Below, piece by piece: positions 22,337 to 31,534 of a DNA stretch of 64,000 nucleotides (within the stretch, counting starts at the first letter, position 1; the number at the start of each line of letters is the position of its first letter). The stretch lies in the NCBI GenBank assembly GCA_000708835.1, contig DF237131.1:26882-90881 (forward strand). Reading direction: 5' to 3'. The stretch comes from Klebsormidium nitens. Its lineage: Eukaryota > Plantae > Klebsormidiophyceae. Position numbers and translations under genes: made by a program. The notes under the pieces were generated by a model, which saw only the letters and a list, made by a program, of their open reading frames with translations, ran no database searches and was not told the DNA's origin.

Positions 22337-25300
22337 CTAGCCCAGTCCAAAATGATATCGCCCCTGAAGCCTATCATTCACTCCGTACTCTAACCGGATC
22401 GGTCCAATCGGTGACATCACCCGAACGCCTCCGCCGAAACCGTACCCCTTGCCTGGCCGGCCTCGTACCCCGGCAGGATCCCCTGCATCAATCGACAGAA
22501 AACGATTTGAGAGGTGTTTCACAATCGAGATTGTAGAGATATCAATCAACGGAAAAGGTTTGGTCGGATGTTTTGCAAAAACGAAACTTGAGGAATCGGG
22601 AATGGTCACAGGGCTGCACATGTAGGACAGCACAGCAACCGCCCCTGACAGAAATGCACAGACGTGATCCATGTGCAACCGACCCGAGTAGCTTGCTCGA
22701 ACGCGTTTCCATACGTCTGCATTCACTCTCTGCATTTGAAAAACAATCAAAGACAGTTGTCCGTAAAGCTTCTGCAAAGAGGAGGAGGCTGAGCGCCAAC
22801 GTCAAGACTGCAAAGCGCGAGTGCAAACGACGTGCGTATTCCTTAAATGTCGCAAATCTGCTTACCTAGCACATGTTTTCCTGAGCCGAAGTCCGTGGCA
22901 GCGTCAACGAAAAGGACGCCCTCCAACAGGTTTGGCTTCTGCATGACAAGCGGGCCAGGAAGTGAGCATCAGAGACTTGATAATTGAAAACCCGAAGATA
23001 GTGTCAAATACTCAAATGCCGTTCTCCGTGAGGAGCAGTCTTCAACAACAACGAGCGCGAATCAAGCAACATACTGTGATCCATTAATCTGGGCACAGCG
23101 CTTTGAGCCTTGTCCAGGGTTTGCAGAAGGTTGGAAACCGTGGACCGGTAATTGGCAGTTTTGTCATGTGAGACAGCAGCAACGGCCTTCCCATTCCCTC
23201 AGAAACAACAAGCTTGGTCGAAGACGACTGTACCGTGCAAGATATGTTAAGAACACTGGGCAACGGCTTTTGTCTTCTGCAGGCTTCCTCGCGAACCAAA
23301 CTCAGAACCAGCAAAATCTGGTTCAAAAACGCTGGCAAGATATGCAAGATCCTTGAGCATAAGTAGGTCAGGCTTACAACGGGGATGATCGCTTCTAGGC
23401 TCCCCGACACGTGCGACTTGCTGGTCCCCAGTTCTCCGTCCTGCCAGCCCCGGACCGAGCCCGTCCCGCCCAGCTCAAAAGCGTCGTACGGCGCCAGATC
23501 GCCCACTACGGTACCCGCTTGCAGCCTGCACACATTCGAACGGCGACAGTGTCAAAATCTTTTACGTCAGCAGGTTTTACCGGACGGCCTGCACCAATCT
23601 GGGGCCGCCCAGCTCATATGAGACGTACGGCGCCAAATCCCTCAACACAGTCCCCGCTTGCAGCCTGACACCAGTCGAAAAGCGACACGTGTCGGAAGTT
23701 TTTATGTGCTCCGGTAACGTGTTATGGAGGGTTCGCTATTTTGCACCTAGCTTCTCGGAAGTTGCGATGGTAATTGGTTTGTATTGGGTGTCATTGTCAA
23801 CGGCACCTCGATTGAGAAAACTGGCAGTAAGACCAAGGCTTCTTACCAACAACACCCATAAAACGACTGTGGTCAGACGAGGGAGCCCCACCAGAGACCA
23901 AACTCAAAGAGCTGCCGCTTGCGGAATGCTGCAAGGTGATTTATTTCTAGAGGTCCTTCGAGCACGCACCTAGCCTGCAGCTCAAGGTAGTCGTTTACAA
24001 CGAGGCCCTTCTTCCAGTTGGCCGTCATCTCGTTGAAGCACAGCCAATTGGGCGCGATGGGAAGCCCCTGCTTCATGCTCAGAAACAACTGCAGACAAAC
24101 ACGAATGCCTATGGAATAATGGAAGCGATACGGGCCTTCTTAGGGCTTAACGGTTCAGTTTGTGATGAAAAGCTCTTCATTCGGGCGCGGCGCGCTTGTG
24201 AGTCTGATACCTCCCCTTCACTGGGCGATACGGCAGGTTGTCGTTCCTAGTTGACGAGTTTACAAACTTGAAAACCTCTCAATGTCCCTCCCGCAAAATT
24301 TGAGAATTTTCACAGTTCCAACAGTGCTTTATTCAGAGGGCCGTGATCGGACAGGGATTGAACGACTGTAGTGCTTTGCTGCAGACTTTGTTGCAAGATC
24401 GTTCTCTTACGAAGCTAGGATAAATCCCAAAATCTTCGCCACAACGCAACGGCCGCAGTTGCTCACCTGTGTGTTCCACGAGAGGTTACCATACACCACC
24501 AAGGCATCATCCCGCGGCTTTCCGCTGCACCACGGGAACGAGTATATCAGTGAAGAAATTGCCAACCAGCAATCGTGTCGTCCCAACCTGCTTCTTAGCT
24601 TCATCCGACGGCTTCTTCCGGTGTAAGGTCGAGAATGGCTGAAAAGCAGAGATCGGCTCCAGCCACTGCTTCTCGTGACTCTTCGCTTTCGAAAAAGGTT
24701 GCCTTGTCAAGACAACACAGCGGGTGGTCTTATGCCCAAAAGTTTGCCGACAGCTTGTCAAGGTTTCTAATTTTTTGTTTCCTAGGCCCTCATTTGCAGG
24801 CTCGACATTCTGGCGCACACGCGATGCATCCGCCCACACCGCATAGACTGAGCCTCGGTTCAGCTCTGGCGGATACATTGGTCGACACAAGGGTAAGTAC
24901 ATAGGATAAGAGCACTTTCATTTTTAAATGGAAAGAACGGAAGGTATACCTAAGTACGTAGATAGAGCACGTCAAGCTAAAATGAAAGAGAACGGGAGGA
25001 AGGTGCCTTGTGAAGCCACTTGCCTGAAGGTGAGCGGGCTGCCGTACATGTCCAACAGCTGCGTCTCCCCAAAGTCGTCCTTCAGGGTGGCGCTCTGCAT
25101 TGACACAATGCGGGCACGTCAGACCGGCTTCGGCCTTTGGGGCACACTTGGATTTAACAACGCGCGCACACTCGTGTCAGACAGACTCATCGTCCTGGGA
25201 AAGAGGTTGCCCACCTTGAAGACAACTTTTTGTGGCAACACATCACATCTGTCCTGCATCACACCTTAGTCCGAAGGCCTTGCCCGACCTCTATCTTTAG

Positions 25301-28300
25301 GGACAAGAAGCAAGATACGTTGCCAGCAACACGCAGGCAAAACACAGAAAATAAAAACTTCTCGCGCCACTACATCATTGCTGAGAGTCGGTGAACTAGA
25401 GTAACGGACTAGCGAAGTGGGGGCCTCTTCAAAGATCCTCAACAGGGTCTATCCCGTGAACTTTTTGAAAGGCGGATGATCCGACGCCGTCTGTATGAAT
25501 TCACCGCTAGCATTCAATCGGTTGAACCCTGCAAGTCAGACAGAGCCTTTCCAGAGATTGGATATTCTCTTCAGCGTACGGCACCTTCCAAGCTTTGCAT
25601 TGTTGATGAGCCGTTGGGTTCGTACGGAACGACCCCAGCCTCGCCCGTCTCTACAGGCTCACTGCCCCAACGGCATCGGCCCGTATCTTATGCACTCGGA
25701 AAACGCACCTGATACTGGATACCCGCCCGCCCCAACCACTCTGGCCGCAGCGGCCGCGAGTACTCAATGCACGCCAGCCGCTTGGCAATTGCGGGACTGC
25801 CCCCCGTCCGCCCCGGGTCGCCCGCCATGTCCTCCGGCTTGGGACAGTGTATGTGGTCCACCGTCTTCAGATTCTGGAACGACAGAGAAGGATGCTGACG
25901 TCAGCACGTCAAAGAGCCAAAGTCGAAGGGAGCGGCCGTTGCACGACAAAAACGTGGTCCACAGCTTCTTTTATCCTGCGTAGAAAAGCGGCACCGGCAG
26001 GTAAGGGGATCTGCAAACAAATGCACTTCGTCGTCGTCGTCAATGCCTTATCTTAGTGACATGGGGGATCGAGGCGGGGAGGAGATGCTGGCATGCCGGA
26101 GATCGCTGATGGGGCCAGAATGTGCGTCATTTGGTTCGACTTTGGGAAGGATGAATTACAAAGGAAACTTTTCCTTCAGGCAGCGTTGCGTCAAAGAGCT
26201 CCCTCAAAAACCTTCAAACCAATAAGCTCGTCTGTCTTCTAAAATGGAGCTTCAAATTCGTCAATTGCTGACTGTTCGCTCCAGTCAGGATAATCCGAAT
26301 GACTTACAGAATACTCACTGATTGTGAACAGAGGTCTGTCAGTCAGTGGATTAACCTGAAATGTGCATCGCTTTGCGTTATTGGCATGGCCCAAAGGTGC
26401 TCTTTGCGGACTGGTAAAGAAGGGCCCAGCCAAGAAACGGTCAATCTGGAACACGAAACGCTCACACACCCGTATTTGTATCCTGCGCCCCGTGCGCTTG
26501 TTGTCACCGTCGAGCCAGGGGTCCAGGTAGTCGAGTTCGCACTTAAAGATGCCCGCGCCCTTCTCGCCCTCTAGCCGCAACCGCTTGCCCTCGCCGAACA
26601 GGTTGGAGTGGGACCACGCCGAAGAGAAGGAAAGGCCCGACAGAAAGTCGCCGCTGTAGAAGAAAAGCTAGCAGGTTTCAGCTCAAAGTGGAATAAGAAG
26701 CGTGGGGGTAGAGTCGGGTAGGGGCCAGCATCCGATACAAACGTAGAAGAGCGGAAGGTCCGTCAAAATAATGGAGACAAGGAGAGGCGCGATGGTAGGT
26801 CGCTGGTACGAAAAAAACGGGGGATGTGAGAAAAACAAGTTGCGAGGAGGTTGTCAAAGGCAATGCGGTGAGAGCAGAACGTCCGCGTGAGTCCAGACCG
26901 CCAAGAAGGAGAGATTCGACAGAAAGTCGCCGCCATGGAAAAACAAGAACGTTCAGAGCACAACAAGGGATTGGGTAAAGCGGGAGAGACGAAACCAGAA
27001 TTTGGGTGGATTCACATTGGGGGCCAAGACGAATAGGGGGCTAAAGGGAATGGGGCGCCTAGAAGCGGAAAAGTGGCTAAAATTGGAAGAGAAAACCGAT
27101 GGAGGGCGCGTTGCTGGTCGAGAGTGGTCATCTGGTCGGGCGAGGGGAGAGCGAGTCTCCCGAAGGAAAAGGTGTTTCGTGAGGAAAGACGCCACTTCGT
27201 TGTATCGCCGGTAGATTTTAAGAAGGTTCCTTGGGTCCTTAAAGAATTCGTGTTAGCGTGTAGGTTAGAAGCAAACGATCCAGTAGATACACGTTGCCCA
27301 TTATGTTGTCCACGTCGCCGATGTCGAAGTCGAAGGGACCTGCAACGGGACGCAGCACTGCTCGAAAAATCACACACTAGGCGGTTGTCAGGACGGGACA
27401 TTCGCATGGGTCAAGCAGCCACACATGACTCCGGCTCGAAGATGAACGACAAAGCGAGACAGATCAAACGGAAGGTGCGTTTCTTTCTCGACCAATGATG
27501 CAGACAATTAAGACAATAAAGAGACCCCGAACGTCCAAAGTAGATAGAGTGCCGGATCGTAAAAGGCGTGAGCTTCCGCCAGACGCGTCGCAAGAGATGT
27601 TTTTTCAGAGCGCCTCGACCTTCTCTGTCGCAGTCGAGGCAGAAGCTATAGCTATACACCATTTTCGACCTTATCATCGCTATTTCGTCTCATCTAAAGG
27701 TCTGTCCCCCTCACAGTGTTGTCGGGCGTTTACATATGTCCCACCCACGATTGCAGGATGCTGGATGACAAAAGTATATTCACTCTCTCCTTTCCCAGCG
27801 TCAGCACGGAACAAAGTCAGCTCCGCAGACGGACATCAACGCAACACGCCACCGCATAAGTCGATCATCACAACAAGCAACCCCCAAGCAGGCCACCCCC
27901 CAACCCGAGCCGGCACTCACTGATTCAGGACGCTGAGCGAGACCCCCCCGGAAAAGTTGTTGAGCACGCTGAACGGCTTGCTCGCGGCCGCTTTCTCCAC
28001 GAGATACACGGTCGCTTCCTGCGCCACGCGGGCTGCACAAACCGGGGGGGGAAAAGAGGCGGGCTTCAAAACACTACGGCAGGGAGTGACACGTACCCCG
28101 CCCCGTTGAGCCCCCCCGCCACCTGTACCGAGCCCCGGTTGTTCTTGCCGTTGTAGCGCTCGCGCAGCGCCAGCTGGTACCCCCCCGGGATGCCCTCGCC
28201 CTCCCAAGGGAACACCGCATCAGGCTCGCCATTCTCTGTGTGGAGCAACCGGGGGGGGGCCGGGGTCAGCCCGGGGGGGGGTGGGACGGGACTTAACCTA

Positions 28301-31300
28301 CTTTCTGCAAAAGCCTGTTTTGTTTCTGCAGAAGGAGCTTGGTACATGAAACGTGACCCGCGGACGCTAAATTCGTCTATAGGGAAAGTGGAGGCGTGTG
28401 GATGCCATGGATGTATCTCCGCCCACAACTCAAACCGGACTTGTTTTAATGCGGTGCTACATGTAAGGCCAAATGGAAGTTTTCCACAATCACGAATCCC
28501 GACAATTTAAGCCCAGTCTGCGTGTCGGTCTGACCATAACAACCTAGTCATAACATTGACAACGAACTCCGTCAGAATGAAAATAGTCACTCGTCCTTGA
28601 ACCGGACTTCGAGCCCCCAGAGCTGCCATCGAACCGGCTTCTTCATTCCCTTCACGACCCGATTGCTCTGCTTCTTACGTTTGTCTCCGAAAGAAGAACA
28701 AGTCAAATGAGCAATCAGTCATGAGCCGACACGTGGCACTCACCCCCGTCGAAGACCTCGGTCGGGATGATGTTGACGTCCGCAAAGATGCCCATGGAGT
28801 GCAGCAGCTGCTTGTTCTCGCGCAGGGTCTCCCCGTTCATCAGCTGGCCCTCCTTCAGGATCAGGTTGCGCTTGATCGTCGACATTTTCGTGTAGCCCCC
28901 CACCTTGTCGGGGCTGCAATTTAAAAAAGGGGAAAAAAAAAACTGTTGGAATTCCTAACCGGGGAGTACGTTGACTAGGTTCAAAGAATGTGTGTGCTGC
29001 ATGCGAGGTGAGGATCTCCGAGAATCTCGTCTGAGAACGGCGTTGCCACACCTCAGTGTAGCCCCTCTGGACTGCGGGGTGAGAAATCCCTCTACAATGA
29101 TTGTGGCCTAAGGTACGTCAACCACGATAAAATATGTTTCCTGTCCCGTGCAGTAAAGAGATGTACGCAAGGTTTCATTACTTGATAGGATACAACGATT
29201 TCCACCCCCTTTTTGGGCTTCCTCTTGCCGGGATGGAGAACGAAGAAGTCACTGCTTCCTTAATTAGTCCTCAAGTATGCTCGCTTTCACTTAAAGTTTC
29301 CAGATAGAGGAGAGTCTCGTGTCCTCTGTGACCTCCACCTTATCCGCGTTGCAGTGCGCAGACATCAGCAATTCGCTCTTACGACTACTTCGATCCTCCA
29401 GAATCAACAAGTAAGGCCGGCCGCTTACATCTTGAATCAAGCCCCGACTGTGTCAGGGGTCTTGGAGGAACACAAAAGCAGATTCTCCTTGACTGATTGG
29501 ACGATCGACAGGTGCGATCAAATCCAAACTGCACTTGGGAGCAAATGGCGAACCGACTGCGCTCGGGTCAAATCAGACTATCCATGTTTGAACAAATCTT
29601 CTTCACGTACAGTGGAATAGAGTGGCATTCATCACAAAACACAGATACTGAGACAAACGGAAAAATCCAAACGGAACGCATTTGAGTGTACTTACTTGTC
29701 TCCACTCTGCACCTTGACGTCGATCCGCCGCAGCCTGGGCTCATGCGCCGTCAGTGTGAGCGTGCCGTCCGGGTCTAAAGTCTCGGGCTTGACAGCCGCA
29801 AAGAACTTCTTGTCAATGTACCACGTCTTGAAGCGGTCGATGACCTCATACAGCTCGTTCATGTTCAGGACCTTATCTACAGGAGAAGAGGAGTGAGATG
29901 TCAGCATACTGTCTCCAGAAACCGAGTGTGACATCAGCGTTTTTCATAGAGAATGACCTGCAGCTTTGAGAAACCGTAGGCAAAGAGGAGTGTAACATCA
30001 GCGTACTTTCTTAAGAGATGACCAGGAACTGTGAGAAGCCGTCAAGAGGTTTGAAAAGAAAATGAGAAGCCACCGGCAGATCTCTGGTGAGGATGATCAG
30101 CATTTTGGAAGAGGAATGAGACTACTTTGCAAAGCAGAAAGCACTCCCACAGGCCAGAAGTTTATGTGTTCTGCGTTCCAACGTTAGTTGCAGTAAGCAT
30201 TGCAATGGAGGAGGACACTGAGAATCAAGGACTCACTTATGAGGGGCTTTGTCTCTTTCTGTATCAGGCTTGTTGGCAGGACGTCGGAACCTTTGACCAC
30301 CACCTTCCTCACAACCGGATGAGGCGCAATCTGCGGAGCAGAAGGACATATGGTTAGATTGCACCACTTCTCAAGACTTGGTCCTTTGCATTGTCAGCAG
30401 TTGGCAGCAGGTACTGTTGTTCAACAAAGTTTCCATTCAAATGAAAAACATAATCCGCGATGCTTGGCGAAGGTTGATCGGCCTCGTTTCAGACAAGGCT
30501 GGCTCAGCGCCGGCTTCCTGAATCTATGAAAGCCCTTTGACTCTCAGAAGCTCGTTTCTTCATTGGGGTTAACGAGTCTCACGCGTTCTGACTTCAAGGC
30601 CATCGTCGCATCTTTCGACGTCAATCTTGGTCAAACTCCAATGTTCTGAGCAAAACGTTCTCTTTCAGTATAAGCAACTGAAATGTCGAAGTGCATTAAC
30701 TCTCTTCAATGCAAGAGTTGTCTGTCCTTCTAATGAAAAATCAACTTGGAGAGGGCTGCTGCCGTCCGCAGAACCAGTGCGGACTATGGACATGATTAAT
30801 TGTTTTCTAATTGGTGGTGGGAGCAGGCAACTTACATGCAACTGGAGCACAACGCCGTCCCTGGTATCCTTGGTATAGGGCACCACGTTCTCAAACACGC
30901 CGAGGCGCCCCAGCCGGTCAATGTCCTCATGAACCTCCTTCACGTTGAATGCAAAGCCCGGCCGGTTTGATATCTTCATCGTCTTTTGGATGAGCGACTT
31001 GAGCTCCGGGTGGTCCATTTCTAGATCATTCCCCTCGGAGTCCAAAATCTGCACTTCGTGGATCAGGAACCGGCCTTCCCGCCCTCTCTTCTGCTGCTCG
31101 CTCGTCCACTCAGGCTTCTCCACGGCACCACTCTCATCGAGATTCTCTCTCAGCCCCGAAAGGCCTGGTTCTTTGGGAGTCTGGCCAGCCCCTTTACTGA
31201 CGACCCCAGCAGCCGCCCCGCCAATTCCGGCTTCCGTCCCCAGTGCACCGCTTATCGACGCAAAGTTTGCATGTCTCCCATACCGAGTCCGTCGCTGCTC

Positions 31301-31534
31301 CGACTCTAAACAATGCTGGACTTTGGACCACGTCCGAGAGGCGCTACTTATCACATCCTCGACGAGCTTGGCGTGCAATGGTACTTTTCTGCGCTCCTCC
31401 ACTTTGCGGTGCTGGTGCCGTTCAGAAGGCCGACTGAGGTGCATCACTCGGCTCAGGGCTTCCATTAGGTCCGCACTGTTTTGTTCTCTTTCAAGAATGT
31501 TTTCCCCGCCCTCCCTTTGAAACTGACCAGCCAT
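22337..31534 (-). CDS. OEP80: Plastid outer-envelope Omp85 beta-barrel protein, OEP80/Toc75-V-like (exons 31534-30836, 30330-30237, 29876-29696, 28913-28744, [A 28235-28097 OR B 28032-27921], 26653-26470, 25873-25709, 25094-25024, 24524-24467, 24088-23970, 23525-23378, 22938-22866, 22482-22337)
   Basis: Three POTRA-like segments (..[26 protein letters not shown]; [12 protein letters not shown]; ..[11 protein letters not shown]). Barrel motifs [52 protein letters not shown] and [38 protein letters not shown]. All phases are consistent if exactly one of exons A/B is used. One GC donor at 25023. Further upstream exons cannot be excluded. Confidence 0.9.
27921..28032 (-). CDS. OEP80-like alternative exon B (112 nt, phase 1 to 2)
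   Basis: tttgtgcag| acceptor and CA|gtgagt donor; encodes [37 protein letters not shown] with strongly G/C-ending codons in this frame. Confidence 0.7.
28097..28235 (-). CDS. OEP80-like alternative exon A (139 nt, phase 1 to 2)
   Basis: ctccacacag| acceptor and GG|gtacgt donor; encodes [47 protein letters not shown]. Confidence 0.75.

Follow-up and report, generated by a model that had tools for sequence, protein, structure and literature searches.

Introduction

In BamA and Sam50, members of the Omp85 superfamily of beta-barrel insertases, barrel strand beta-1 pairs with beta-16 and with the C-terminal beta-signal of the substrate (reviewed in PMC8292188). Client choice and folding by Omp85 proteins are an open question, barely explored in chloroplasts. 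The first biochemical evidence that beta-1 of Oep80 binds beta-signals dates from 2025: in Arabidopsis Oep80, the substitution S408C in beta-1 gave a disulfide across the lateral gate and a cross-link to a beta-signal peptide (PMC12373785). Here, we analyse an OEP80-like Omp85 gene that lies within a 64,000-nucleotide (nt) stretch of the genome of the streptophyte alga Klebsormidium nitens (assembly GCA_000708835.1, contig DF237131.1, positions 26,882 to 90,881 of the forward strand). We call this whole stretch the window, and all positions below are counted from its first letter. Two adjacent exons of the gene, A and B, are spliced as alternatives and appear to exchange the end of the third POTRA domain (POTRA3), the hinge between POTRA and barrel, and beta-1.

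Exons 2 and 3 of alpha-tropomyosin are mutually exclusive for steric reasons, and the IIIb and IIIc exons of FGFR2 are kept apart by reading frame and nonsense-mediated decay (NMD), together with regulators. For Dscam, 14-3-3zeta, and ATE1, exclusivity is brought about by competing RNA structures (PMC6071210, PMC7797038). In a literature search, we found no paper on mutually exclusive exons in connection with Omp85 or OEP80, in Klebsormidium, or at this locus.

A preliminary description of the window, made from its letters alone, had read A and B as mutually exclusive exons that swap the POTRA3 end and beta-1 of an OEP80-like protein. RNA contigs, reading frame, conservation, and position in the protein all support that reading. 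We judge it probable, at roughly three chances in four, that A and B are a genuine mutually exclusive pair in an OEP80-like gene, exchanging the POTRA3 end, the hinge, and beta-1. Two gate variants of one protein would be expected, since it is with beta-1, at the lateral gate, that the beta-signal of the substrate pairs in BamA and Sam50 and, by cross-linking, in Arabidopsis Oep80.

Results

Exons A and B are each joined to the same two neighbours

Exons A and B lie between constitutive exons 4 and 6 (Table 1). Exon 4 ends GACGGGG/gtgagt, leaving one nt (phase 1), and the start of exon 6 at 26653 requires two nt from whichever exon precedes it. Both A (acceptor cacag/, donor /gtacgt) and B (acceptor gtgcag/, donor /gtgagt) have lengths of 3n+1. 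Inclusion of A alone gives an open reading frame (ORF) of 748 amino acids (aa) and inclusion of B alone one of 739 aa, and the two proteins differ only in 46 (A) versus 37 (B) residues. With both exons in the mRNA, translation runs into a stop at codon 501; with neither, it does so at codon 408. A reading of the region and a script returned the same coordinates, lengths, phases, splice sites, and peptides for the two exons as the preliminary description, and these ORFs and early stops bear out its statement that either exon alone restores the frame, whereas both or neither shift it.

We then compared these predictions with RNA, using Logan contigs from four public runs (X1, X5, X11, and X13) of four studies, over positions 25300-30300 of the window; depths are means over whole contigs. 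Joints are written as the last position of one exon, a slash, and the first position of the next. Outside the pair, the constitutive joints 30237/29876, 29696/28913, and 26470/25873 were observed, and a loose end at 25709 leads into exon 8. The two joints of exon B (28744/28032 and 27921/26653) were present in 4/4 runs, the joint from exon 4 to A (28744/28235) in X1 and X5, and the joint from A to exon 6 (28097/26653) in X5; all four junctions foreseen from the sequence were thus found in RNA. Among the contigs of the four runs, which drop rare forms, there was neither a joint between A and B (28097/28032) nor one that skips both (28744/26653). The preliminary description had also considered that both exons might be included through other splice sites. 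Alternative sites allowing A and B together in frame were rejected, as no such joints occur in the RNA contigs.

The ratio of the two isoforms differs strongly between RNA samples. Exon A is the major form in X1 and X5 (about 60-68% of the joints), with joint depths of 67 for A versus 41-48 for B in X1, and of 41 for A versus 20-24 for B in X5. In X11 and X13, a single 2.5-kb contig passes through B and the depth on A is zero, with intron pieces at depth 3-5 being assembled. Sorted by study, RNA runs of P1-P4 contained the full set of sequence words of exon A and those of P5 and P7 a part of it, and none of the listed P6 runs had any. Both mRNAs therefore exist, and A spans the range from undetected to major form. 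As a separate observation, one pre-mRNA contig of X1 is a single C short of the 9-C run at 28251, upstream of the A acceptor, the cause being length polymorphism of the run or an error at the homopolymer.

Table 1. Positions of the alternative exons, their surroundings, and further features of the gene, in window coordinates
Feature	Position	Strand	Length	Description
Constitutive exon 4	28744..28913	-		POTRA3 strand 1, helices, strand 2; RNA joints 29696/28913, 28744/28235, 28744/28032
Alternative exon A	28097..28235	-	139 nt	Phase 1 to 2; long acidic/aromatic loop, POTRA3 last strand YQLALRER, Gly-rich strand SVQVAGGL
A-B intron	28033..28096	-	64 nt	No spliced joint across it seen (4 runs)
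Conserved intronic block TTTTGAAG.CCG.CTCTTT	28053..28071	-	19 nt	Upstream of B acceptor; invariant in 4-way alignment
Alternative exon B	27921..28032	-	112 nt	Phase 1 to 2; POTRA3 last strand ATVYLVEK, then 15-residue strand
Constitutive exon 6	26470..26653	-		Barrel strands 2-3 onward; phase 2 start; RNA joints, Pfam Omp85
OEP80-like Omp85 coding region	22337..31534	-		13 constitutive coding exons plus alternative pair A/B; Pfam, open ORFs, profile, RNA joints over exons 2-8
Decayed copy of exon-6 acceptor and first codons	26887..26943	-		74% identity, in B-to-exon-6 intron; AG lost, not used

Both exons are conserved and constrained in related algae

A search with the ORF around exon A returned the JGI protein P0160, and a search with exon B returned P0161; these led to contigs L002 and L003, to which we added the Logan contig L004. 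The three contigs carry the orthologous gene of three closely related algae. Between the window and these relatives, every exon can be aligned and the introns cannot, and A and B are kept with AG/GT sites in 3/3 relatives. Exon B is 112 nt long in each relative, and exon A is 145 nt long, an in-frame difference of +6 nt (two codons) that retains the 3n+1 length. The A-B intron measures 72 nt in L002, where inclusion of a single exon leaves the frame open to the stop codon, and inclusion of both or neither leads to early stops. The L002 and L003 copies of A share 99.3% identity and those of B 98.2%, compared with 94.6-96.5% for the neighbouring constitutive exons and 54-61% for the flanking introns. 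At the amino-acid level, exon B is 97% identical to the relatives.

Divergence at synonymous (dS) and nonsynonymous (dN) sites was estimated by the Nei-Gojobori method between the window and L002. The constitutive exons have a dS of 1.17 and a dN of 0.024 (omega, the ratio of dN to dS, 0.02), exon A a dS of 0.35 and a dN of 0.119 (omega 0.34), and exon B a dS of 0.31 and a dN of 0.055 (omega 0.18). Synonymous differences are depleted in A and B together relative to the constitutive exons (16/59 versus 234/396, p=5e-6). Nonsynonymous change is more frequent in exon A than in the constitutive exons (p=8e-5), but within A the nonsynonymous differences are fewer than the synonymous ones (p=0.025). 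Judged from these alignments, both exons have remained protein-coding over a divergence that has saturated synonymous sites. Coding constraint, constraint at silent sites, and a conserved intronic element (described below) are together the usual signature of functional, regulated alternative exons, and it is this signature that the comparison points to. The preliminary description had suggested such a comparison and had reckoned with the outcome that only one exon is ever used and the other is not conserved; instead, both are spliced in RNA and both are kept in the three relatives. Because the RNA uses exactly the four predicted joints, and because both exons are kept beside introns that can no longer be aligned, the original sequence observation stands far above the level of chance.

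The same data bear on the possibility that A is tolerated but redundant or neutral, its ratio to B varying through noise in splicing or as a side effect of overall splicing-factor levels. The isoform with A fits a profile of OEP80 proteins less well than that with B (467 versus 484 bits, B being better by about 16 bits), A has evolved faster as protein (dN of 0.119 versus 0.024), and it appears dispensable in X11 and X13, in which only B was assembled. Against this stand the predominance of A in RNA from two independent studies and its persistence with an open frame, intact splice sites, and a length of 3n+1, kept despite an in-frame 6-nt indel, over a divergence at which introns are beyond alignment. 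Its identity between L002 and L003 also exceeds that of the neighbouring constitutive exons, and its dN lies below its dS. We regard a redundant exon A as unlikely.

Beyond these relatives, runs from five other organisms (X31-X36) contain 15-46% of the 31-mers of exon A, which suggests that other relatives or environmental samples may carry a near-identical exon A. In the JGI metagenome collection, a protein-pattern scan gave no match, and a 21-nt pattern across the junction of exon 4 with A gave five unrelated contigs only, which are chance matches.

The exchanged segment maps to the POTRA3 end and beta-1

The gene model was built from RNA joints, ORF continuity, and homology to streptophyte OEP80 proteins, and comprises 14 exons in either mRNA (coding sequence 31534-22337, minus strand). 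All of its splice sites are AG/GT except for one GC donor, that of exon 8 at 25024 (a GC-AG intron, CTTCAG/gcaagt), which is needed for an open frame; exon lengths and the GC donor are identical in L002 and L003. Pfam POTRA matches were found in the translations of exons 1 and 4 (E=1.3e-4 for exon 4), and PF01103 (Omp85) matches in three exons, one of them starting in exon 6. The protein has three POTRA regions, an Omp85 barrel, a loop-6 SVRGW, and a C-terminal RYHFGLG, the last two aligning with the invariant SVRGY and RFHFGxG of OEP80 homologues. Both isoforms could be aligned over their full length, all three POTRA regions included, to the OEP80 profile, which was made from 105 homologues. 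In database searches, streptophyte OEP80s scored best, with E values of about 1e-120 to 1e-129. Identity to the OEP80s of Chara, Closterium, Spirogloea, mosses, and seed plants is only about 37%; the same OEP80s are 58-71% identical (65-68% for Chara, Closterium, and Spirogloea) to the streptophyte transcriptome protein P0017, which had served as a search query. A search of representative proteins with exon 6 matched only a 99-aa fragment and land-plant OEP80s.

On the OEP80 profile, A and B fall on the same columns, 'gkvdlvmnvver' followed by 'sgGfsaGgGiss'. The best matches of the profile in the PDB are crystal structures of POTRA1-3 of cyanobacterial Omp85 (3mc8 and 2x8x). Because the 3mc8 POTRA1-3 construct ends ...VNVVVNVVERS, the '...VVERS' strand can be taken as the last strand of POTRA3. 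In the AlphaFold model of OEP80 from the moss Physcomitrium, with a mean predicted local distance difference test (pLDDT) score of 64.8, the last POTRA3 strand lies at residues 361-370 and 16 barrel strands follow, the first at 377-379, the second at 394-404, and the next at 410-419. The start of exon 6 corresponds to the strand at 394-404, and the exon also aligns with that at 410-419. Residue S408 of Arabidopsis Oep80, whose cysteine substitution reported on the lateral gate, is the S of GGGIS and falls inside the exchanged segment, by an approximate count from the C-terminus in a Brassicaceae homologue. Profile columns, construct end, moss model, and Arabidopsis cross-link thus agree with the placement proposed from the sequence, and support A and B as predicted alternatives for a stretch that runs from the loop in front of the last POTRA3 strand, through this strand and the hinge, up to and including beta-1. 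In A this loop has 19 residues, with a conserved core of 10; in B it has seven.

These features raise the question of whether A encodes a regulated 'off' or dominant-negative form, in which the insertase is inactivated or re-purposed, for example as a channel or a decoy. Such a role would be in keeping with an acidic/aromatic insertion of 19 residues ahead of the last POTRA3 strand, with the shorter Gly-rich beta-1, with the greater departure of A from the family consensus, and with the strong switching of its usage between samples. There is, however, no direct evidence for it, and A retains both the E-R/K with which the POTRA strand ends and the beta-1 GG motif, giving it the look of a working strand rather than a disabled one. 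We consider an inactive or re-purposed A isoform very unlikely, and favour two working versions of the segment.

Elsewhere in the protein, the first 150 codons (31534-31085), ahead of POTRA1, are about 50% identical to the relative, compared with 92-100% for the remainder. This N-terminal extension seems to be a targeting region, or a disordered one, that evolves fast. Upstream of the OEP80-like gene, the contig of the relative carries genes with pentatricopeptide repeats (PPR; L002 1-3225).

Reading frame and a short intron may enforce exclusivity

In the RNA, exon 4 is spliced to A or to B, and the chosen exon in turn to exon 6. Exclusivity at the protein level would be enforced at least by the reading frame, because inclusion of A and B together, or of neither, gives premature stops and presumably NMD.

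A second layer may lie in the A-B intron. In most introns of the gene, the acceptor is preceded by CTGAC or CTAAC at a distance of 23-31 nt, whereas the A-B intron has no YTRAY branch motif. Across the introns, conservation between the window and its relatives is confined to the TTTTGAAG block of the A-B intron (Table 1), a putative non-consensus branch site or regulator site. The only conserved adenine-containing element of this intron is 31-32 nt from the A donor in the window and about 42 nt from it in L002. The tiny intron would probably add to the exclusion, as an element about 31-42 nt from the A donor is likely too close for spliceosome assembly. Splicing-regulatory sequences in A, in B, and in the TTTTGAAG block could set the ratio of A to B; such sequences are suggested by the low synonymous divergence of the two exons and the conserved intronic block.

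We also looked for RNA structure. RNAalifold paired the 3' end of A with the TTTTGAAG block in a proposed helix that has one compensatory pair. As evidence for a competing or occluding structure, this was rejected: single-sequence folds had z-scores of -1.0 to +0.3, and 3/4 of the aligned sequences are near-identical. Pairing of C-runs and G-runs between the acceptor tracts and the exon G-runs was likewise discarded, since only the window shows it and it is not conserved.

A and B are not recognisable duplicates

The preliminary description took a motif shared by the two acceptors as a hint of an old tandem duplication. The motif, CCCCCCCCGGTT, is indeed present ahead of both the A and the B acceptors in the window, but it is not conserved in the relatives, and the hint did not hold up. 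Comparison of the DNA of A and B by blastn-short gave only C/G-run matches, the score of their protein local alignment (17) equals the mean of shuffles, and no further A- or B-like exon or decayed copy was found in the gene or the window. Because A and B have no detectable similarity, and because the gene holds no further copy, a tandem-duplication origin is unsupported, though not disproved. A and B may instead have arisen independently.

Decayed copies of a different kind do occur in the gene. Tandem copies of the adjacent acceptor plus exon start (74% identical) lie at 26887-26943, 23588-23687, and 29978-30016, that is, 97-279 nt upstream of, and in the introns of, exons 6, 11, and 3. The RNA depth at 26887-26943 is at intron level only.

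Discussion

Several points weigh against a mutually exclusive pair that yields two gate variants. At nonsynonymous sites, A evolves about five times faster than the constitutive exons. The steric argument, plausible as it is, depends on an unproven branch site and on the minimal intron size of this alga, and no significant RNA structure supports exclusion, single-sequence folds being no better than shuffles (z -1.0 to +0.3). Orthology to OEP80 and function as a beta-barrel insertase are assumed, because identity to other streptophyte OEP80s is only about 37%, and in the AlphaFold model, which is of the moss homologue and not of the two isoforms, the beta-1 segment has a pLDDT below 50. Since assembled contigs drop rare forms, the missing A-plus-B and skipped forms, and the missing A in X11 and X13, are weak evidence and count for little. 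The depths of A and B in X5 total about 63, compared with about 155-159 on the flanking exons, a shortfall that may come from uneven coverage or from contigs not shown. What we call regulated could also be a strain or library difference between runs. Finally, both isoforms are known from RNA and genome sequence, not at the protein level.

The X5 shortfall, together with runs labelled with two organism codes and a genome view confined to this 64-kb window, might suggest two mRNAs from two loci or genotypes (a paralogue or a strain mixture) rather than alternative splicing of one pre-mRNA; this is highly improbable, as the contigs placed on the locus are all at least 99% identical to it with no variant letters reported, A and B stand in tandem in the window and in 3/3 relatives, the joint depths of A and B in X1 sum to the flank depth (106-115), and pre-mRNA contigs run from introns into both A and B. 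A mutually exclusive pair in a single gene remains our preferred reading.

What the exchange would do to the protein is a separate matter. The isoforms would be insertases with different gate or hinge properties, possibly with different client preference or regulation. A stronger version, in which a conserved, sample-dependent splicing switch yields two insertases that differ in beta-signal recognition or gating according to condition, is put forward tentatively, and we would not bet on it as it stands. Were it true, it would be the first case of Omp85 client selection tuned by alternative splicing. In any event, two natural versions of beta-1 and the hinge in an otherwise identical protein offer a ready-made comparison for the study of substrate recognition and gating.

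How does this locus compare with described systems? It resembles classical mutually exclusive exons in having two adjacent, phase-compatible exons of which apparently just one enters the mRNA, in the frameshift caused by double inclusion or skipping, in a very short intervening intron, and in the combination of reduced synonymous divergence with a conserved intronic element. It differs in that A and B, of 46 and 37 codons, are not recognisably homologous, most known pairs being evident tandem duplicates, and in that, unlike in Dscam-type systems, no docking or selector RNA structure was found here. Because its two exons are not recognisably related, the case bears on how mutually exclusive pairs arise. 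The host, a streptophyte alga, also sets it apart, as such exons have rarely been reported from this lineage; the locus adds a well-supported instance of either-or splicing where that mode is considered rare.

Compared with land-plant OEP80/Toc75-V (PMC12373785, PMC7050246, PMC4195282), the protein shares an N-terminal extension, three POTRA domains, a 16-strand Omp85 barrel, the SVRG(Y/W) motif of loop 6, and the C-terminal R(F/Y)HFG.G strand, and the exchanged segment covers the equivalent of Arabidopsis S408 in beta-1. Its identity to these proteins is low (about 37%), and either-or splicing of the POTRA3/beta-1 segment has not been described for any OEP80. In Arabidopsis, the outer-envelope protein CRL is reported to assist the formation of the TOC75-V/OEP80 complex (bioRxiv 10.1101/2023.03.07.531578). 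What is new here is a known splicing mode acting on the gate strand of a known machine; the case is solid for the splicing and for selection on both exons, and a functional difference between the isoforms is hypothetical. With BamA and Sam50, the protein shares its superfamily, and the A/B segment corresponds to the homologous strand plus the POTRA-barrel hinge. In bacteria and mitochondria, however, one gene provides one beta-1, and diversity comes from paralogues, as in the pairs BamA/TamA and Toc75/OEP80, whereas here splicing gives two.

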